From Heteronotia binoei (lineage: Eukaryota): DNA of 64,000 nt. The translations under genes and the position numbers were made by a program. The stretch lies in NCBI RefSeq assembly GCF_032191835.1, contig NC_083227.1, positions 10,478,001 to 10,542,000 on the forward strand, written 5' to 3'. The notes under the pieces were generated by a model, which was not told the origin of the DNA, searched no databases, and saw only the letters and a list, made by a program, of their open reading frames with translations. This document shows positions 3,175 through 47,500 of the stretch, piece after piece. The stretch's first letter is position 1; each line of letters begins with the position of its first letter.

Positions 3175-3470
3175 GAGAACAAAACAAGAAGTCAAGTTGC
3201 ACCTTTTAAGGCCAGCTTAGTGTGGCCGGACCTGCCTGTCCCACATTGGTCTTGTCAGCCACCAGCGAGCCTGCAGCAAACGTGGACTATTGCACCCTTC
3301 TTAAATCTTCGTTCGCGAAGCCAAGCCGAGAGAGAGTTTTATTCAGAACGCAAGCTTTCGTGTGCTCTCTAAGCTTACGTCCTGAATAAAACTAAGTTGG
3401 TCTTAAAGGTGCCACTGGACTCCTATTTTGTTCTACTACTTCAGACCAACACGGGTGACCACTTGGACCT
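3175..3470. mobile_element. Penelope-like terminal-repeat remnant
   Basis: Motif aagcttacgtcctgaataaaact...cttaaaggtgccactggactcc...ttcagaccaacacgg. Related pieces at 15245-15445, 59085-59490, 62020-62090. Confidence 0.65.
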
Positions 3471-3471
3471 A

Positions 3472-6400
3472 CCGTATATACTCGAGTATAAGCCGACCCG
3501 AATATAAGCCGAGGCTTCTAATTTTACCCCCAAAATCTGGGAAAACTTATTGACTCGAGTATAAGCCGAGGGTGGGAAGCGCAGCAGTTACTGGTAAATT
3601 ACAAAATTAAAACACTGGTAGATACCAATAAAACGACATTCATTGAGGCAGTAAACTATTGTTCTGCAAGTAGAAAAGAGGGTCAACCTAAACAATATGG
3701 TATCAACAATAACTAAAAAGTACAAAACCTTAGCTCAATCAGCAACTACGGTAAGCTAAAACACAAGAGCTAAAATCCTTCAAAACTGGATTCCTCCTCA
3801 TCATCTGTATGCCCAAATAGAGCTTCAGCTTCAGTCGGTGTGAGGGTATCAGCGTAGATATTGCCATCACCACTGAGTTCGCAATCATCGCCATCACTGC
3901 TGTCATTTCTCATACACAGCGCTGTCTTCACTGCCCTCCATAGCATTACTAATGCCACATTTCTTAAAGGCACGTTGCACCATGTCTTCTGGAATATCTT
4001 CCCATGCATCACGAACCCACGTTGCTATCAGTTCTATGTGGGGCTTCTTTAGATTTCCAACTTTTGTCAGTTGGGCTTGACCAGATGACATCCATTCATG
4101 CCACATCTTTCGCACACGGTCTTTGAAAGGTTTATTTAAACACACATCTAGGGGCTGTAATACAGATGTAAGCCCACCTGGAATAACGGCCAAAGTAACT
4201 TGAGAAGACTTTGCCAATTTTTTTATGTCATCAGATGTGTGAGCCCTGAACATATCCCAAACTAGCAATGAAGGTTTTTTCTTCAAGGCTGCTCCTGGTC
4301 GTCCTTTCCAAATTTCTTCCAGCCATTTTTTTTGTTCCTTGTTCATCCATCCAGCCTTTAATATGTGCCCGCACGTTTATTCGTGGTGGAAATTTCACCT
4401 TTTTAGGCAATGTCTTCCTTTTAAAAATAATGACAGGCCGCAGCTTAGTTCCATTAGCCAAACATGAGAGAACGGCTGTGAAATGGGTTTTTTCATTTCC
4501 TGTGGTCCTGAGTAAAATAGTTTTGTCTGCCAAACTTGCCACAGTTCTGTTGCTGGGAAGATCAAAGGTCATAGGTGTTTCATCCATATTCCCAATATCT
4601 CCCAAGTCGTAGTTATGGCTCCTTCTTTGTTTTATGATGAATTAATGGAATGACATCACTTTTTCATCAAGGTCTTTTGGCAACTTCTGTGCAATCTTTG
4701 TTCTTTGCCGCAAACATAGGTCAAACCTGTTCATGAAGCGGGAACACCATCCTGCTGTCGCAGCAAAATTTTCAATGCCTGGTGCTTTTAGTTTGTCGTC
4801 TTTAGCCATTTGAAGGGCACGTAAGCGAATTCCCATGCGTGTTACACAGTAGCCATTTTGACGACACTCCATAACCCACTTATGCAATTCAGTCTCTAGA
4901 GCCCCATAGGGACTCGTTAAACCACGTCGAGCTTTTTTTGCCTTTGGGATTTTTTCCAAGTCAGCTTTCATTTTCCGCCAGTCCCTCACTTGTTTTTCAG
5001 CAACACAAAATTCCCTACTTGCAATGCTGTTATTGCTTTCTTCTGCTCTTGCCACAACTTTAAGTTTGAAACCAGCTTCGTATGACCTGCGTTTTTGTTT
5101 TGATCCAGTATTAGAGGTAGTGGGATCCATTTCTAACGGAATTAAAAAAAAGCATAGCGTATATTTCCCAATATATACGGTACATATGGGCACATATGGG
5201 CATTATACACAGGACAGCGGCATAAAATTGTTTGGGTGTGAATCCAGGGGTAAATGACAACCCCTGGATCTGTCACTGAGGAAGGGAGGGTGCTTCCGCG
5301 GCTCCCGCCTATGCACTCATCTCGAGTCCCTACTGGCCGCCTCACGCCCGCCATCTCCCCGCCCGCTGAAATGGCTTGCATCTGTTTCAGTCTGAGGTGA
5401 TAGGCACACCAGCCCTGCTGTTAGGCTGAAATTGATGCAAGCCATTTTAGCGATTCCTCTCGATTTCCCCCATCCCCAAGCTGCACAGACCTCCTGATAA
5501 CCACGTGGAGGGTTGTGGGAAGGGTTGTTAACAGGGATGGGCATGAGCCTTGGTTTGTGAACCGCGACTCAAGACAGTTTTTGTGATGAAATTAGGGTTG
5601 TGGGGAGGTTCATGGCCATTCCTAATCTTGATTTAGTCAAAGACTAAATTAGGATGATCTTGTTAATGACAATCTTTTTGGGTCTCTCAGATCTTAAATG
5701 TTTTGATGCAATGTAAACAGAAAATGTGTCACCGTACTTATTCTTTCTACAATTTAGACATCAGAGCTAGCTAATGTTACTACTTCCATCTTTATTTTGC
5801 AGAAATGGATGGCAGAGGCAATCAGCCTGAAGAATTCCTGTCCAGTGGAAACTCTCAGTGAAAGCTTTAAACTTAAACTGAGAGCTAAAAACTAATTTAT
5901 TTTTATTTAAATAGTATGGACATAATTTTTGTTTCAAAAGGGCTAATACAATTAAATTTTGTATGAGAATATTTTTTAGGAAAACTCTAGTCCTATAGAA
6001 AAAGAGTTATACTGATGTTACTTTTGTCTAGAAAGGGAAAATTTTGCCCACAAAATTCCAAACATACTCATCTGTTCTGAAAATGAACTTTAGTGTAGGT
6101 AGTAGATCCACTTAACAAACACAGAATCATCCCATTCTTAAATAGATCATATGAGTTTCTGTGCTGTCCTTAACAGTGTTGTTCACTGAACCCAAACCTG
6201 AAGCAATAACTTGTTTTACTCACTTTGTCTGTAGGAAGATTGGCTGGCCCAAAGGAGCCAATCCTGCAGGGAGAATTCTTCCTGCAGGGTGGGCTGGACC
6301 ATTAACACAATTCAAAGGAGGGAGAGCAAAATAGAGGGCAGCCATTTACCGTAAACAGAAAAGCTGATGGGCAGACCCTTTCAGCTGGTAGGTTTAAATT

Positions 6401-6826
6401 CTTGTAAGCCATTAAACCCCCTGGTTTGCTCCCCCTGCTTTGAAGGGGGGGTGGTGGTAAGAAAGATTGCTGAAATGGCCTCACGGCCGCCATCTCCCCA
6501 CCCGCCTCACGGCCGCCATCTCCCCGCCCGCCTCACGGCCGGAGGTTTGCCGCGAATCTGGTTCTGCATTTGCGTTCAGAACCCCGGGGGGGAGACCCTG
6601 AAAAAGTTACTCCCGCTGCATCTCGGGAAGGGGATTGTAGCTGCCTCGCTCACATAGGCGGAAACGTCTGCAATGCCTTTCGAAACCCTGGCTGCCGAGG
6701 AGCTGCCAACGCAAACACCGCCATCTCCCCGCCCGCCTCACGCGTGAGTCGAGTATAAGCCGAGGAGGGGGTTTTTCTGCCCAAAATTTGGGCAGAAAAA
6801 CTCAGCTTATACTCGAGTATATACGG
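3472..6826 (-). mobile_element. Full-length pogo-superfamily (Passer-type, DD35D) DNA transposon
   Basis: 22-bp perfect TIRs CCGTATATACTCGAGTATAAGC; TA target duplication at 3470-3471 and 6827-6828; subterminal repeats of the TIR core; transposase inside. Confidence 0.95.
3770..5130 (-). pseudogene. Passer/pogo transposase (Brinker-like + CENP-B HTH + DDE_1) with three lesions
   Basis: MDPTTSN...KRRSYEAGFKLKVV...LRQRTKIAQKLP is intact up to an in-frame TAA at 4642-4644. Then DETP, +1 frameshift in T8 (4326-4333), LVWDMFRAH...LQPLD (35 residues between the two D), and +1 frameshift at 3906-3908. Confidence 0.92.
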
Positions 6827-7044
6827 TATTTATTAACATTACGGTCACTGTTCCCGACCGGTATTATCGCATTTACATCTGATGACCCTGAAGCAGGGGG
6901 AGGGCCTCCAAACTGAGGGAACCCCTGCCCCCACCTGGGGATTAAACACAACGGGAAACCACAGTCCACAGATAATTCGAAATTTACAGAACCCACAGTG
7001 TACTAACAGGGTTGCCACTAAAATTTTATTTTTCATTTCCCGGA

Positions 7045-8290
7045 CTTAACATAAGAGAAGCCATGTTGGATCAGGCCAATGGCCCATCCAGTCCAACACT
7101 CTGTGTCACATAAGAACATAAGAGAAGCCATGTTGGACCAGGCCAGTGGCCCATCCAGTCCAACACACCGTGTCACATAAGAACATAAGCGAAGCCATGT
7201 TGGACTAGGCCAGTGGCCCATCCAGTCCAACACACTGTGTCACATAAGAACATAAGAGAAGCCATGTTGGATCAGGCCAGTGGCCCCTCCAGTCCAACAC
7301 ACTGTGTCACACAGTGGCCAAAAACCCCCAAGTGCCATCAGGAGGTCTACCAGTGGAGTTAGAAGTCCTTCCACTGTGCCCCTCTCCCAAGCACCAAGAA
7401 TACAGAGCGTCACTACCCCAGACAGAGTTCCAACAATACGCTGTGGCTAATAGCCAGTGATGGACCTCTGCTCCAGTTGTTGATCCAATCCCATCTTGAA
7501 GCTGGTTATGCTTGTAGCCGCCACCACCTCCTGTGGCAGTGAATTCCGCATGTTAAAAATCCTTTGGGTGAAGAATTACTTCCTTTTATCCGTTCTAACC
7601 TGACTGCTCAGCAATTTCATTGAATGTCCACGAGTTCTTGTATTGTGAGAAAGGGAGAAAGGGACTTCTTTCTCTACCTTCTCTATCCCATGCATAATCT
7701 TGTAAACCTCTATCATGTCACCCCGCAGTCAACGTTTTTGTAAGCTAAAGAGCCCCAAGTGTTTTAACCTTTATTCATAGGGAAAGTGTTCTGCCCCTTG
7801 AATCATTCTAGTTGCCCTTTTCTGTACTTTTTCCAATGTTATAATATCTTTTTTGAGGTGCAGTGACCAAAATTGTACATAGTACTCCAAATGAGATCGC
7901 ACCATCAATTTATACAAGGGCATTATGATACTGGCTATTTTCAGTTCCCTTCCTAATAATTCCCAGCATGGCGTTGCCCTTTTTTATTGCAATTACAGCA
8001 CACTGTCTTGACATTTTCAGTGAGTTATCCACCATGACCCCAAGATCTCTCTCTTGGTCAGTCTCTGCCAGTTCACACCCCGTCAACTTGTATTTATAGC
8101 TAGGATTTTTGGCCCCAATGTGCATTACTTTGCACTTGGTCACACTGAACATCATCTGCCACGTTGACGTCCACTCACCCAGCCTCGATAGATCTCTTCG
8201 GAGTGCCTCACAATCCTCTCTGGTTCTCATCACCCTGAATAACTTAGTTTCATCTGCAAACTTAGCCACTTCACTGCTTACTCCCAACTC
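7045..8290 (-). mobile_element. CR1 LINE 3' fragment with tandem 3'-tail units
   Basis: RT motif VAKFADETKLFR and (CATAAGAA)n tail. Paralog at 45345-46660 in the same + strand orientation. Confidence 0.9.
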
Positions 8291-9796
8291 CTAATCGTTA
8301 ATGAACAAGTTAAATTGCTTGTTCCTGTTGGAGTTTACAGAGTACCAGCTCTCTCACCCGCTTCCTGATTTCTCCCTTGCATAAAGGTTGCAAATGAGGG
8401 TTGTCTGCTTCTCTAGATTGCAGAAACCACCTCCTTTCTTGATGCTGATCTGCTTATTACACTTTCTGGAACCTGAAAGTGAAACTTTCCCAGCTTTGGA
8501 AAGTTCCTATTTGTTAGCATTGAGAGTTTACTTGAATTGAAGTTTGTATCTTGGTGTAATTTTTGGGACAATTGCAAAACAGATGTCCCTGCAGTTAATT
8601 TTGAAAGAAGCTGATATTGAATGTCTTTCTTCGACAAATATTTTTGCAGTTGAGACCTGTGTAGTTGTAGAGTGGAACATTTCCTTAAGGCTTGCATTTA
8701 TGCAACATGACCTATTCATTTTTTTTAAACTTGCTGTTATGTTTGAATGGTGGTCAGGGAAAGTCACTGCCACGGAAGGTGGTGGCGGCTGCAAGCATAG
8801 CCAGCTTCAAGAGGGGGTTAGATAAAAATATGGGGCAGAGGTCCATCAGTGGCTATTAGCCACAGTGTGTTTGTGTATATATATTGGCCACTGTGTGACA
8901 CAGTGTTGGACTGGATGGGCCATTGGCCTGATCCAACATGGCTTCTCTTATGTTCTTAAGCAATCACATTTGCAAAATTTACTTTGCACAGTGCAGAGTA
9001 GAAAGTGCTAGTTGTCTGTGAAATCCAACAGCAGCGAAACCCATTTGCAACCCTCTGCTGGATTTTAGCAGGAGACAAAACATCAATTCCAGACAGAAGC
9101 ATGACCCAAAAAACAGGCTTATCTTTATATGTAAGTTAAATGCAGTACTAACAGGTAGGGATGAAAACAGTTAGATGTTTAAAGTTTGTGAACTGCTAAA
9201 TGCTTAAACTAGCCTTGCTTTGAAAATGCTACAGGCAGACCATGGAAATCATGCAGGGACAGAGCTCAACAAACACATTAGGCTGGTCGCTGGGGGTGGA
9301 GCTGAGAAAAAGGTGGACTGGGAAAGGGCATCATTAAGCGGCTCACAATCTCCTTTATCTTTCACCCCCGCACAGACACCCTGCGAGGTAGGTGAGGCTG
9401 AGAGAGTTCTCCCCAAAGCTCCCCTTCCAAGGACTGCTCTGCAAGAGCTATGGCTGACCCACAATTGGAGGAGTGGGGAGTCAAACCTGGTTCACCCAGG
9501 TAAGAGTCCACACGCTTAACCACTACACCAAAACAAAATGCACAATTCTATCATCCTGAAACCATCACCGCCGCCCCTCCCCCTGGTCAGTGGAAAAATT
9601 GTCTTCCACAAAACCGGTCCTTGGTGCCAAAAAGGTTGGGGAACGCTGTTCCAAGGAATAACGTTTGGCTGTTTCTTTAAACAGATGCAGTTATATGGTG
9701 CATGTTTGCTTTAACCGATACCATGTTGCATCCAGTGCTTATTACAAAAAAACGCAGGCGACGCACAGTCCCAAGAGAGATATTTTCAGCCCTTAC

Positions 9797-9892
9797 CTGC
9801 CAATCCTTCCTCTTCATCGCAGCCCAAGAGAAACAGCCCTTCCTCCTCTTCTTCCAGCCGGGATATGAGGTCAGGTTTAGCAATCAGAGGTC
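9797..9892 (-). CDS. Gene A KRAB-B exon (96 bp, phase 1-1)
   Basis: aaacag|GA...GCAG|gtaagg; encodes (G)PLIAKPDLISRLEEEEEGLFLLGCDEEEGLA. Confidence 0.9.
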
Positions 9893-10843: not shown

Positions 10844-10970
10844 CCAGAGAGGCCACGTTCCCATAATTCTCCAGCATGACTTCCTTGTACAGAGCTCTTT
10901 GCGTTGGACTCAGCAGGCTCCACTCCCCCGGGGTGAAATTCACGGCCACCTCTTCGAAGGACACCCCCGC
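10844..10970 (-). CDS. Gene A KRAB-A exon (127 bp)
   Basis: cttgcag|...CTGG|gtgagg; encodes [42 protein letters not shown]. Confidence 0.95.
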
Positions 10971-12028: not shown

Positions 12029-12043
12029 CTGAGCGGACTGCAT
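12029..12043 (-). CDS. Gene A start exon, coding part (MQSAQ)
   Basis: GCCGCC-ATG CAG TCC GCT CAG|gtatgt; phase 0 joins KRAB-A in frame. Conserved in all four paralogs. Confidence 0.75.
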
Positions 12044-38263: not shown

Positions 38264-38477
38264 NNNNNNNNNNNNNNNNNNNNNNNNNNNNNNNNNNNNN
38301 NNNNNNNNNNNNNNNNNNNNNNNNNNNNNNNNNNNNNNNNNNNNNNNNNNNNNNNNNNNNNNNNNNNNNNNNNNNNNNNNNNNNNNNNNNNNNNNNNNNN
38401 NNNNNNNNNNNNNNNNNNNNNNNNNNNNNNNNNNNNNNNNNNNNNNNNNNNNNNNNNNNNNNNNNNNNNNNNNNNNN
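38264..38477. other. Assembly gap (214 N)
   Basis: N run inside CR1 tail repeats. Confidence 1.
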
Positions 38478-38479
38478 TG

Positions 38480-39640
38480 ATGGACCTCTGCTCCATATAA
38501 GAACATAAGAACATAAGAGAAGCCATGTTGGATCAGGCCAACGGCCCATCAAGTCCAACACTCTGTGTCACACAGTGGCAAAAAATTTTATATACACACA
38601 TACACTGTGGCTAATAGCCACTGATGGACCTGTGCTCCATATTTTTATCTAAACCCTTCTTGAAGGTGGCTATACTTGTGGCCGCCACCACCTCCTGTGG
38701 CAGTGAATTCCACATGTTAATCACCCTTTGGGTAAAGAAGTACTTCCTTTTATCCGTTTTAACCTGTCTGCTCAGCAATTTCATCGAATGCCCACGAGTT
38801 CTTGTTTTATCTAACCCCCTCTTGAAGCTGTCTATGCTTGTAGCCGCCACCACCTCCTGTGGCAGTGAATTCCACATGTTAATCACCCTTTGGGTGAAGA
38901 AGTACTTCCTTTTATCCGTTCTAACCTGACTGCTCAGCAATTTCATCGAATGCCCACGAGTTCTTGTATTGTGAGAAAGGGAGAAAAGTACTTCTTTCTC
39001 TACTTTCTCCATCCCATGCATTATCTTGCCAACCTCTATCATGTCACCCCACAGTCGACGTTTCTCCAAGCTAAAGAGCCCCAAGCGTTTTAACCTGTCT
39101 TCATAGGGAAAGTGTTCCAACCCTTTAATCATTCTAGTTGCCCTTTTCTGGACTTTTCCCAGTGCTATAATATCCTTTTTGAGGTGCGGTGACCAGAATT
39201 GCACACAGTATACCAAATGAGACCTCACCATTGATTTATACAGGGGCATTATGATACTGGCTGATTTGTTTTCAATTCCCTTCCTAATAATTCCCAGCAT
39301 GGCGTTGGCCTTTTTTATAGCAATCGCACAGTCTTGACATTTTCAGTGAGTTATCTTCCACGACCCCAAGATCTCTCTCTTGGTCAGTCTCTGCCAGTTC
39401 ACACCCCATCAACTTGTATTTGTAGCTGGGATTCTTGGGCCCAATGTGCATTACTTTGCACTTGGCCACATTGAACCTCATCTGCCACGTTGATGCCCAC
39501 TCACCCAGCCTCAACAGATCCCTTTGGAGTGCCTCACAATCCTCTCTGGTTCTCACCACCCTGAACAATTTAGTGTCATCTGCAAACTTGGCCACTTCAC
39601 TGCTCATTCCCAACTCTAAATCATTTATGAACAAGTTAAA
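38480..39640 (-). mobile_element. CR1 3' fragment (chimeric 3' end)
   Basis: LFNLFINDLELG...FADDTKL RT motif; duplicated C-terminal segment; CATAAGAA tail. Confidence 0.9.
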
Positions 39641-42367
39641 GAGCCTATTTGCCTTCCTTGCAGCTCTCAAACATCTGATGTGTATTCTATGTAGCTCTTA
39701 CATTTAGCAAGTTTGGCCACCCCTGGCTTAGAGGGAACACAGCTCTGAATTCCACCAACTTTCCTTTTCCCCAAATGAGGACTGTCTGGAAGGGTCAGAG
39801 AGAAAGAGAGAGGGGGGGCAGTCCTAGAGAGGCACTTAGGGCGGGGCTGTGGGGAAGGGGGGGCACTATTTCCTTCCCCGCCGCCTTGCAAGAAAGCGCC
39901 CTGGAGTCTGGCTTCCGCTTCACTGGCTGGAAGGGAACCCGGTGAGCTGCCTTTGGAGGTAGGAAAATGTGGGTTGGGGGCTGCAATGCAAGATTTAAAG
40001 TGGGTGGGTGTTTGTGTGTGAAGAAGTGGGGATGAAAGAGAGCACACCCCCCCCCCCAGGGTCTTCCTTGCCTCCTTTGGCACCCTCCCTCCTGCCCCAC
40101 GCTGGTCCCCTTTGCACAGAGCCACGTGGTTCCATCAGCGGACTGGAGCGCAGGATTCGAATGCGGCACTTTGGGAGACTGGAGGGAGTCGAAGTGGCTG
40201 CCAGAGGCACATTTAGGAAGGAGTTTTTTTTGGGGGGGGGTGGAGAGTGAGCTTTGGGGTAGGGAGAGGGGCGGCACGGGTGGGGTGGGGGGGCCGAGAA
40301 GCGGATGGGGGGGGGAGGACAGGGACGGAGGGGCTGAAGAAAAGGCTCAGGGGGACAGAAGGACCTTGTCACTGGACCCTCAGAAGACCCACACGAGGAA
40401 TCTGAAGAGTGCAGAAGGGGGGATTTTTGGAGGAGATCTAAAGCATCCAAAGACTGTGCCTCTTCTGTCCTGGGGGAATGGAAGTTGGAGGGCCAGCTCT
40501 TCTCCCCACCGGGGATTTGCTCCACGTTTGATGCTTTGGGGGGGGGGGGGTTGCATTTGCCTGCTTCTGCACAGCACCCTGCAGGATTTGGGGGCCCCTT
40601 TGGGAGTTTCCACGTGGCTTTTCTGCCATCTTGCCCGGTGCTTTGGGGTGGAGCTGAATTTCGCAAGCCAGGCGGGAAGGCGGCCATTTCAGATTCCCCA
40701 GGCCTGCCCCAATGGCTGCTAGTTTTCCTTCCTCTCTTCTCTTTTATTAATTTGCCAAATGACTAGTGCATCTATAATCTGGTTACACAGGTCTCCTTTT
40801 GGGCAGGAGCTCACAGGAGTAGATCTTCAGAACCTCTAAATTTTATTGTGTTCTTTTTTTCTTAACTCTCCCCCCTCTCAAACCCGCCCCTTGCTTCTGG
40901 GCTCCATTGTTCAGCTTATTTTTTTATTATTTTTACGAATTTATAGTCTGCCCTTTCCCATATTGGGCTCAGGGTGGATTACAACACAATACGGCAGTTA
41001 AAAACCAACAATGAAACAATTAAAAGTTAAAACAGTTAGAACCATTAAATCAACCCCCCTGTGAGAATTTTTCTGAACTCTTAAGATCTGACAAACTTTC
41101 TCATATTTTCCCCATAAAAAACGGGGAAATAACCCAAACGTATCAAGTAGACAGATGGAAATCTTCATCATGCCACTGTGACCACATAGGAGAAAGAAAT
41201 TTTAAAAGTATGGTGGGAGCAAGGCTTTATTATGACAATAATAATTCAAGGAACGTTTTAAAGTAGATGCTCTTTTCTCCTGATTTGTCCACACCTGGAT
41301 TCAAGACATCTTCCCTTGAGGCTTCCCTCCACGGAAATCTCCTCGCAAGAAAAAAGGCTCACAGGTGAACTTTTTTCCTTGTGGGTCTAGTGTTCTGTGT
41401 GCAGGGAGAAATGAATTTTGAGCTGGCTTCTCCCAGTCAGGCACTCCCTCCCATCCTCTAAGGCAGGAGTGGGCAACGGTAGCTCTCCAGAATTTTTTTT
41501 TTTGCCTACAACTCCCATCAACCCCAGCCAGCATGGCCAATGGCTGGGGTTGATGGGAGTTGTAGGCAAGAAAACATCTGGAGAGCTACCGTTGGGCACC
41601 CCTGCTCTAAGGCAGTGGTCTTTTGGCACCAGGGACCGGTTTTGTGGAAGACAATTCTTCCACAGACCAGGGTGGGGGGATGATTTCGGGATGATACAAT
41701 TGTGCACTTCATTTCTATTCGATTGGTGTGGTAGTTAAGTGTGCGGACTCTTATCTGGGAGAACGGGGTTTGATTCCCCACTCCTCCACTTGCAGCTGCT
41801 GGAATGGGCTTGGGTCAGCCATAGCTCTCGTAGTTGTCCTTGAAAGGGCAGCTACTGTGAGAGCCCTCTCAGCCCCACCCACCTCACAGGGTGTCTGTTG
41901 TGGGAGAGGAAGGTAGTGGAGATTGTGAGTCGCTCTGAGACTCTTAAAATTTGAAGTGGAGGGCAGGACAATGTCGTCTTATTACGTTGTAATATATAAT
42001 GTAATAATTATACAACTCACGGCCCGGTTGCTAACAGAACATGGATCGGTACCGGTACACTGCTGGGGGGTTGGGGACCCCTGCCCTAAGGACTCTCTCA
42101 CCTCATTCCGCACAAATTCTCTTTGCGGGGGGGGGGGGGGAGTGGGAAGGTCTTGGCCCCCTCAGAGGGGAGGAGGGAGGAGTGTGGCTTCAGGCAGGGA
42201 AAAGGACTCCTCCCAGGAGGGAGTTGGAAGGAAACATTTCCAGGGGAGGTGGAGGAGGATGGATTAATAGGGTTTCCCCCCTCTTTCTTTCTCTCCCTCC
42301 CATGCAGAAGGACCCCTGGATGCCTCCTCCACCGTCTCCCCTGTCTGCTGAAGGGAAGAGAGCCGAC

Positions 42368-44503: not shown

Positions 44504-47500
44504 GTAGGGGATGAAAATATCTCTCTTGGGACTGTGCGTCGCCTGCGTTTTTTTGTAATAACCACTGGATGCAACACGGTATCGGTTAAAGCAAACATGC
44601 ACCATATAGCTGCGTCTGTTTAAAGAAACAGCCAAATGTTATTCCTTAGAACAGCGGTCCCCAACCTTTTTGACACCAAGGACCGGTTTTGTGGAAGACA
44701 ATTTTTCCACTGACCAGAGGGAGGGGTGGCGGTGATGGTTTCAGGATGATAGGATTGTGCATTTTGTTTTGGTGTAGTGGTTAAGCATTCTTAACTGGGT
44801 GAACCAGGTTTGACTCCCCACTCCTCCAATTGCAGCTGCTGGAATGGCTGTGGGTCAGCCATAGCTCTTGCAGAGCAGTCCTTGGAAGGGCAGCTTTTGG
44901 GAGAACTCTCAGCCTCACCTGCCTCGCAGGGTGTCTGTTGTGGAGGTGGAAGATAAAGGAGATTGTGAGCCGCTTAATGATGCCCTTTCCCAGCTCCACC
45001 TTTTTCTCAGCTCCACCCCCAGCGACCAGCCTAATGTGTTCGTTGAGCTCTGTCCCTGCATGATTTCCATAGTCTGCCTGTAGCATCTGCAAAGCAAGGC
45101 TAGTTTAAGCGTTTAGCAGTTCACAAACTTTAAACATCTAACTGTTTTCATCCCTACCTGCATTTAACTTACATATAAAGATAAGCCTGTTTTGGGGTCA
45201 TGTTTGTGTCTGGAATGGATGTTTTGTCTCCTGCTAAAATCCAGCAGAGGGTTGCAAATGGGTTTCGCTGCTGTTGGATTTCACAGACAACTAGCACTTT
45301 CTACTTTGCATTGTGTAAAGTAAATTTTGCAAATGTGATCGCTTAAGAACATAAGCCCTGTTAGATCAGGCCATTGGCCCATCCAGTCCAACACTCTGTG
45401 TCACATAAGAGAAGCCATGTTGGATCAGGCCATTGGCCCACCCAGTCCAACACTCTGTGTCACAGAAGAACATAAGAGAAGCCCTGTTGGATCAGGCCAG
45501 TGGCCCATCCAGTCCAACATGCTGTGTCACACAGTGGCCAAAAACCCCCAAGTGCCATCAGGAGGTCCACCAGTGGAGCTAGAAGTCCTTCCACTGTGCC
45601 CCCCCCCCAAAGCACCAAGAATACAGACCGTCACTGCCTCAGACAGAGTTCCAACAATACGCTGTGGCTAATAGCCACTGATGGACCTCTGCTCCAGATG
45701 TTGATCCAATCCCATCTTGAAGCTGGTTATGCTTGTAGCCACCATCACCTCCTGTGGCAGTGAATTCCGCATGTTAAAAATCCTTTTGGTGAAGAATTAC
45801 TTCCTTTTATCCGTTCTAACCTGACTGCTCAGCAATTTCATTGAATGTCCACGAGTTCTTGTATTGTGAGAAAGGGAGAAAAGGACTTCTTTCTCTACCT
45901 TCTCTATCCCATGCATAATCTTGTAAACCTCTATCATGTCACCCCGCAGTCAACGTTTCTGTAAGCTAAAGAGCCCCAAGCGTTTTAACCTTTCTTCATA
46001 GGGAAAGTGTTCTGCCCCTTGAATCATTCTAGTTGCCCTTTTCTGTACTTTTTCCAATGTTATAATATCTTTTTTGAGGTGCAGTGACCAGAATGTTTTA
46101 AATGTTTTGACTATTCTAACTGTTTATATATGCATATGTTAATTCAAATTGTTTTATTATCTGTTGTGAGCCGCCCTGAGCCATCCTTGTGGGAAGGGCG
46201 GGATACAAATCATAAAATAAAATAAATTAAAAATTGTACACAGTACTCCAAATGAGACCGCACCATCGATTTATACAAGGGCATTATGATACTGGCTGAT
46301 TTGTTTTCAGTTCCCTTCCTAATAATTCCCAGCATGGCATTGGCCTTTTTTATTGCAAACGCACACTGTCTTGACATTTTCAGTGAGTTATCCACCATGA
46401 CCCCAAGATCTCTCTCTTGGTCAGCCTCTGCCAGTTCACACCCCATCAACTTGTATTTATAGCTAGGATTTTTGGCCCCAATATGCATTACTTTGCACTT
46501 GGCCACACTGAACATAATCTGCCACGTTGACGACCACTCACCCAGCCTCGACAGATCTCTTCGGAGTGCCTCACAATCCTCTCTGGTTCTCACCGCCCTG
46601 AACAATTTAGTTTCATCTGCAAACTTAGCCACTTCACTGCTCACTCCCAACTCCTAATCATTAATGAACAAATTAAATTGCTTGTTCCTGCTGGAGTTTA
46701 CAGAGTACCAGCTCTCTCACTCACTTCCTGATTTCTCCCTTGCATAAAGGTTGCAAATGAGGGTTGTCTGCTTCTCTAGATTGCAGAAAATCCACCTCCT
46801 TTCTTGATGCTGATCTGCTCATTACACTTTCTGGAACCTGAAAGTGAAACTTTCCCCGCTTTGGAAAGTTCCTATTTGTTAGCATTGAGAGTTTACTTGA
46901 ATTGAAGTTTGTATCTTGGTGTAATTTTTGGGACAATTGCAAAACAGATGCTACTGCAGTTAATTTTGAAAGAAGCTGATATTGAATGTCTTACTTCGAC
47001 AAATATTTTTGCAGTTGAGACTTGTGTAGTTGTAGAGTGGAACATTTCCTTAAGGCTTGCATTTATGCAACATGACCTATTCATTTTTTTTTTTTTTTTT
47101 TGCTGTTATGTTTGAATGGCGGTCAGGGAAAGTCACTGCCACAAGAAGTGGTGGCGGCTGCAAGCATAGCCAGCTTCAAGAGGGGGTTAGATAAAAATAT
47201 GGAGCAGAGGTCCATCAGTGGCTATTAGCCACAGTGTGTGTGTGTGTATTGGCCACTGTGTGACACAGAGTGTTGGACTGGATGGGCCATTGGCCTGATC
47301 CAACATGGCTTCTCTTATGTTCTCCCTCCATACCACATACCACAGGTACATCTATTTGCCTTCCTTGCAGCTCTCAAACATCTACCTACCTACTGGTGGA
47401 CATCCTGATGGGACCTGGGTTTTGGCCACTGTGTGACACAGACTGTTGGACAGGATGAGACACTGGCCTGATCCAACATGGCTTCTCTTATGTTCTTATG

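Follow-up and report, generated by a model that had tools for sequence, protein, structure and literature searches.

Results

A KRAB zinc-finger gene harbours an intronic Passer-type transposon

The window analysed here is a 64,000-nucleotide stretch of Heteronotia binoei contig NC_083227.1 (positions 10,478,001 to 10,542,000) that holds three KRAB zinc-finger paralogs, termed genes A, B and C. The subject is a Passer-type transposon in an intron of gene A and the KRAB-transposase fusion that splicing into it would create. Gene A and the transposon are both encoded on the minus strand, coordinates are those of the window, and a slash marks a splice junction. The coding part of gene A exon 1 (12029-12043; ATG to CAG, encoding MQSAQ) ends at a GTATGT donor and is followed by a 127-nt KRAB-A exon (10844-10970; Pfam KRAB, 1.2e-22) and a 96-nt KRAB-B exon (9797-9892) that ends in phase 1 at GCAG/gtaagg. 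The zinc-finger exon (1-533) begins after a tttctttcag acceptor at 535-534 and continues beyond the window start; its reading frame contains fingers with H/C links and is open for 191 amino acids up to the window edge. These exon boundaries were read from the DNA. The presence of both a KRAB-A box and a C2H2 finger array identifies gene A as a KRAB zinc-finger gene. The KRAB-B exon has homologs in gene C (95%) and gene B (80%), and every intron that follows KRAB-A or KRAB-B in gene A and its paralogs is in phase 1.

The intron between KRAB-B and the zinc-finger exon spans 9.26 kb and contains an entire 3355-bp element (3472-6826) in the sense orientation relative to gene A. The element is flanked by TA at 6828-6827 and 3471-3470 and is bounded by 22-bp terminal inverted repeats, the 5' repeat (6805-6826) being a perfect complement of the 3' repeat (3493-3472). 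It occurs once in the window and is absent from genes B and C, as the first-pass annotation of this DNA had stated. Passer transposons are defined by a DD35D catalytic motif, a BrkDBD plus a helix-turn-helix (HTH) domain, a TA duplication, inverted repeats shorter than 30 bp, a length of 1.6-4.0 kb and a single open reading frame (ORF) of 400-500 amino acids (PMC7386202, PMC9976928). Pfam profiles detect complete BrkDBD (PF09607, 2.1e-13) and HTH_Tnp_Tc5 (PF03221, 3.1e-11) DNA-binding motifs in the first 162 amino acids of the transposase and pieces of DDE_1 (4.1e-20) past an in-frame stop. The catalytic part (3770-4641) is broken, and its DD35D spacing is still readable. A hand count on the translation of ORF 3903-4346 gives 35 residues from the D of VWDMF to the D of QPLDV, and the first D lies in NMDETP. 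All of the structural hallmarks are present, including a 452-codon ORF in the open copies of the family, and together with the nearest matches they assign the element on structural criteria to the Passer family of cut-and-paste transposons in the pogo superfamily. The window copy differs from Passer transposons in being broken by one stop and two frameshifts and in having a long composite region of 1.7 kb between the 5' repeat and the ATG.

The transposon carries a putative 3' splice site two bases before its start codon

A putative 3' splice site (5133-5263) immediately precedes the transposase ORF. On the minus strand it consists of a T8 tract (5151-5144) and a TAG whose AG lies at 5134-5133, followed by AA (5132-5131) and the ATG (5130-5128). 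AG is absent across the 129 nt from 5263 to 5135, which is the longest gap among the 644 AGs of the intron; 0.08 such gaps are expected by chance. A crude pyrimidine count ranks this acceptor in the top 4 of 651 intron AGs, and it lies 4.6 kb upstream of the canonical zinc-finger acceptor. Rebuilding the transcript by script with 9797 joined to 5132 creates a Glu codon from G and AA, followed by MDPTT..., in a 242-aa frame that ends at TAA 4644-4642. The predicted coding part of the alternative exon (4642-5132) is thus AA, 162 codons encoding the BrkDBD and HTH_Tnp_Tc5 domains, and TAA. The first-pass annotation had proposed this fusion as an alternative last exon of gene A, and its coordinates and reading frame were reproduced throughout. 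Because G plus AA encodes Glu and is followed by Met, any phase-1 host donor ending in G (KRAB-A or KRAB-B) would join in frame. Sense orientation and frame are therefore roughly a 1-in-2 matter, since all introns after KRAB-A and KRAB-B are in phase 1. A donor-like GTGAGG within the element (4984-4989, CAA/GTGAGG) is found in all copies and would bound a 143-nt cassette exon (5132-4990).

The window copy has no special features relative to its family

The genome contains about 16-18 long copies of the element with 94-98% identity, plus many short derivatives that retain only the ends. The window copy was compared with 15 other long copies. The 452 codons are fully open in 5 of these and open behind an ACG start in one more, and the persistence of open copies indicates recent activity of the family. 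The first 162 codons are open in 10 of the 15. Five other loci have exactly the same string over the acceptor and the first codons, the nearest subfamily shares the T-run and AG-free zone, and both the CAA/GTGAGG motif (4989) and an AATAAA (4136) occur in every copy compared. A second 5' variant in the genome (...ctttttctataggactagat-ATG) likewise places an AG equally far from its ATG. The acceptor, AG-free zone, AATAAA and intact N-terminus had been read as evidence for a new gene; other genomic copies have every one of them, and none sets the window copy apart. The AG-free zone and T-run are unusual, yet they were inherited from the transposon family and did not evolve at this locus.

Three lesions inactivate the window copy. 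All fall at or after the TAA, as first described, and all are private to it. One is a nonsense codon (4642-4644) created by a TCA to TAA change at 4643, where 15 of 15 other copies have TCA; the other two are single extra As in A-runs at 4326-4333 and 3906-3908, each causing a frameshift. The probability that all three lie past codon 162 is about 0.27 under uniform placement (arithmetic from 875/1361 nt). A private change was scored at sites where 70% or more of the other copies disagree with the window copy. The 486-nt N-terminal part has 4 such changes: one gives D44A, one is silent and two fall in the codon of S74P, in total 2 replacements and 2 silent nucleotide changes. The other 875 nt have 12 substitutions, including the TCA to TAA change, plus the two single-A insertions. 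D44 and S74 are positions that vary among relatives. The encoded DNA-binding part is probably still functional, and at about 1% private divergence an intact DNA-binding part is expected without selection. No KRAB sequence was found in the flank stretches of other copies that were examined. No paralogous empty site was recognisable, the flanks of the element consisting of other repeats.

Related transposases share the acceptor in annotated fusion models

Relatives were sought among 1.84 billion representative proteins, and matches with N-terminal host parts were found. Xenopus laevis XP_018105792 ('plectin isoform X1') joins a chromodomain to BrkDBD-HTH-DDE, and its DNA-binding part is 82% identical to that of the window. 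The corresponding X. laevis locus (L049:10600-13198) contains an element of the same family as that of the window: the inverted repeat is identical at 21/22 positions, TA duplications are present, and nucleotide identity is 87% over 1440 bp. The last intron of the model runs from ...ACT G/gtaagt to ...ttttttttatcctgttag/AA-ATG, its 3' end also being written ...cctgttag/AA-ATG, and this junction yields D-N-T-E-M-D, an exact match to the protein. Pyxicephalus adspersus XP_072279403 combines KRAB with a full Passer transposase that has 69% amino acid identity to the window; its junction runs from ...ACA A/gtaagt to ...tgctag/AA-ATG and yields T-K-M-A-S. The AG/AA-ATG site was absent from the more distant Passers (45-54% identity). 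The acceptor two bases 5' of the ATG is thus a conserved feature of the Passer lineage of the window, and it is where the host part is joined in two annotated fusion models, of which one includes KRAB. Both models resemble the window prediction in that the same transposon lineage is joined to a phase-1 host exon at AG/AA-ATG, and the Pyxicephalus host part likewise contains KRAB. They differ in that they are automatic annotations that keep the whole open transposase, and the Xenopus host part is a chromodomain protein instead of a KRAB protein.

Proteins 82-88% identical to the window family were also found in Pleurodeles waltl and the turtle Pelusios castaneus. Identity across hosts (87% of nucleotides and 21/22 repeat bases in Xenopus; 82-88% in these proteins) far exceeds that expected from vertical descent, so horizontal transfer is likely. 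In four P. waltl models (P0001, P0041, P0182 and P0034), differing N-terminal stretches all meet the transposase at ...E-MDPS. This arrangement is compatible with AG/AA-ATG splicing or with unspliced read-in, because G plus AA of a genomic TAG-AA also encodes Glu. In Cyprinodon tularosa XP_038139413 ('chromobox protein homolog 1b isoform X1'; P0113), a Passer BrkDBD plus HTH separates the chromo domain from the chromo-shadow domain, which may reflect internal exonisation of the Passer DNA-binding part.

The 3' end and products of a predicted fusion RNA

The first-pass annotation pointed to an AATAAA at 4131-4136 as the 3'-end signal of the fusion RNA. The motif is present, and its role as a poly(A) site was rejected: it encodes part of L-N-K-P in the DDE domain, it occurs in all 15 compared copies as well as in the Xenopus element, and the Xenopus model reads through it. 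That model also reads through the GTGAGG motif homologous to 4989. The next AATAAA downstream is at 3343, beyond the element. In the 3' untranslated part of the Xenopus element there is a separate AATAAA, a signal that the window family lacks.

An exact look-up of the 162-aa and 183-aa products returned no record in public assemblies, and no processed copy of the fusion junction was found in the animal's own genome. The fusion junction string had no match in metagenome contigs; the canonical KRAB-B/zinc-finger junction used as a control was equally absent, which makes this search uninformative.

Repeats in the 5' region of the element and in the paralog introns

Between the 5' repeat and the ATG, the other copies (L002-L018, L031-L036) have about 0.7-2.1 kb of sequence that is largely non-homologous among them; the ORF is 98% identical. 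The upstream sequence is of two types, each joined to the ORF no more than 2 nt from the ATG, and one copy (L036:5020-5480) has a GC-rich, CpG-island-like stretch. In the window copy a repeat of about 260 bp (5365-5624) is nested in the 5' region; dozens of genomic copies match it at 70-75% identity, part of it on both strands (a palindromic tail). The internal 5' region (6479-5365) recurs elsewhere in the genome (G000:C3:53793925-53795560) at 96-97% in permuted order and without the transposase ORF. Tandem units of about 26 bp (...gtgaggcgggcggggagatggcgg...), each with a GTGAGG donor-like motif, lie at 6541-6478 and 5366-5337. One unit is about 210 nt upstream of the acceptor, so the transposon might conceivably have a short 5' intron of its own. 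Copies that join 6166-5986 straight to the ATG could be read as products of intron loss, and in that case they would demonstrate native splicing at 5133. This idea was rejected as unproven, since an exact GT..AG excision should leave ...ggactagaaa-ATG and these copies have ...ggactagat-ATG.

The introns of the three KRAB zinc-finger paralogs contain CR1/L2-like reverse-transcriptase fragments (7050-8300, 38600-39700 and 46200-46650) and are packed with many copies of a tail repeat of about 67 bp (...gttggactggatgggcc...cttatgttcttat). A run of 214 Ns (gap or mask) occupies 38264-38477.

Discussion

The capture of transposases by host genes is an established process, as the first-pass annotation had noted, and the splice site used for capture is usually already present in the transposon; the number of known host-transposase fusions stands at 94 or more, a third of them with KRAB (Cosby et al., 10.1101/2020.05.07.082677). 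Lineage-specific examples are already known in the anole and the python. One fusion-gene criterion of Cosby et al. is a transposase-derived domain, and Pfam detects one here; their others are host and transposase parts in separate exons of a single transcript, each intron backed by RNA, and purifying selection on the transposase part. The candidate in the window would belong to a well-described kind of host-transposase fusion, and two known systems are close to it. KRABINER combines ZNF112 with the Mlmar1 mariner in vespertilionid bats; it is about 45 My old, occurs in nine species, and has been RNA-verified and functionally tested (10.1101/2020.05.07.082677). As in the window, a KRAB zinc-finger gene has the transposon in one of its introns; the upstream KRAB exons join an ancestral transposon acceptor as an alternative to the zinc-finger exon, the splicing that is predicted for the window. 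The frame of KRABINER required a 1-nt deletion, whereas the window frame is open by default. KRABINER derives from a mariner, whereas the window element is a pogo/Passer transposon of which only the DNA-binding part would be kept in a fusion predicted from the genome sequence.

POGK joins KRAB to Passer-derived BrkDBD and HTH_Tnp_Tc5 domains (PMC7386202), the same arrangement as in the window prediction. POGK is unlike the window product in being about 610 aa long, in keeping its DDE domain (DN35D) and in evolving under strong purifying selection; the window product would lack DDE. The DNA-binding part of the window is 41% identical to platypus POGK, as against 96-98% nucleotide identity to a young repeat family. 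These values, a separate recent insertion and the missing DDE domain rule out POGK orthology, and the initial description of the fusion as POGK-like does not hold in the sense of descent.

The locus is best explained, at evenly poised confidence, as a young, inactivated Passer copy in a phase-1 KRAB intron that is fusion-competent through its family acceptor and whose fusion transcript is likely a minor by-product. A Passer copy landed in the sense orientation in the phase-1 intron between KRAB-B and the zinc-finger exon, bringing with it the strong 3' splice site that the family appears to carry before its start codon (T-run, long AG-free zone, TAG/AA-ATG). The product would be the 242-aa protein with KRAB-A, KRAB-B, BrkDBD and HTH, cut before the catalytic domain by the private nonsense mutation. 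That the built-in acceptor yields such a minor transcript, coding for KRAB plus the DNA-binding part, has close to an even chance of being correct. We infer splicing at the locus, the end point of the RNA and the activity of the protein. The insertion is probably neutral and is a candidate nascent host-transposase fusion. A neutral pattern across the N-terminal region, which the first-pass annotation had named as grounds for refuting the fusion, cannot be rejected: 4/486 against 12/875 gives a Fisher p = 0.44, which is neutral-looking, and with only 16 substitutions the test has very low power. There is no sign of a selected gene, and the locus would have taken no more than one or two initial steps along the published transposase-capture route and would fall short of domestication.

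Two results weigh against this explanation. In a 5.8-billion-protein collection, the length range searched contained no protein matching the N-terminal part at 90% identity or more, with KRAB or without it. A sequence scan found no clear poly(A) signal 3' of the stop within the element. Both results fit a silent passenger, in which the element is removed with the 9.26-kb intron and no measurable KRAB-transposase transcript is made. A terminal exon requires a poly(A) site, most intronic transposon copies are not exonised, and a fusion-like protein and a processed junction copy were both missing from the searches above. We regard this alternative as a serious one, though less probable than the minor by-product, because the acceptor is among the best-looking in the intron, lies far upstream of the canonical one, and has a homolog used in two annotated fusion models. 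Another outcome would be a cassette ('poison') exon between the acceptor at 5134-5133 and the CAA/GTGAGG donor at 4989. Vertebrate exon definition favours a 143-nt exon between a good acceptor and a GTGAG donor, and the size and both sites suit it. Such an exon, which we consider unlikely, would shift the zinc-finger frame and give a 142-aa product of KRAB plus partial BrkDBD. The Xenopus element also contains this GTGAGG, which its annotated model reads through, and the motif is coding (K-Q-V-R) in all copies.

The least probable reading is a new functional KRAB-transposase repressor, in which the alternative last exon encodes a protein that binds Passer inverted repeats and directs TRIM28 silencing of the family. 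The in-frame architecture, the two complete DNA-binding motifs and the placement of both amino acid changes at positions variable among relatives are compatible with it. A target exists, since the cognate family retains open 452-codon copies, and a KRAB plus Passer model is known in Pyxicephalus. Published KRAB-transposase fusions repress via cognate inverted repeats (Cosby et al., 10.1101/2020.05.07.082677). On the other side, the window copy has no specific feature, its N-terminal frame being open in most other copies; the density and type of its substitutions look neutral; the placement of all lesions past codon 162 is readily obtained by chance, at the probability given above; and selection could not yet be seen in an insertion this young. 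That a KRAB-transposase repressor is being seen at birth, as a lineage-specific 242-aa isoform expressed while its cognate family still has open copies, is very unlikely; in that case the host would be using the built-in acceptor and DNA-binding domain of the element against an active invader.

If the minor fusion transcript is not made, the element is an ordinary intronic transposon copy. If it is made, the locus would be an unusually early snapshot of transposase capture, in frame without an enabling mutation, limited to the DNA-binding part and with a source family that is possibly still mobile. Independent of the outcome at this locus, a conserved acceptor two bases 5' of the start codon is the junction of fusion models in two amphibians. 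Because the AG/AA-ATG acceptor is conserved, Passer insertions into phase-1 KRAB introns would be pre-adapted to KRAB fusion, with POGK as an old example.

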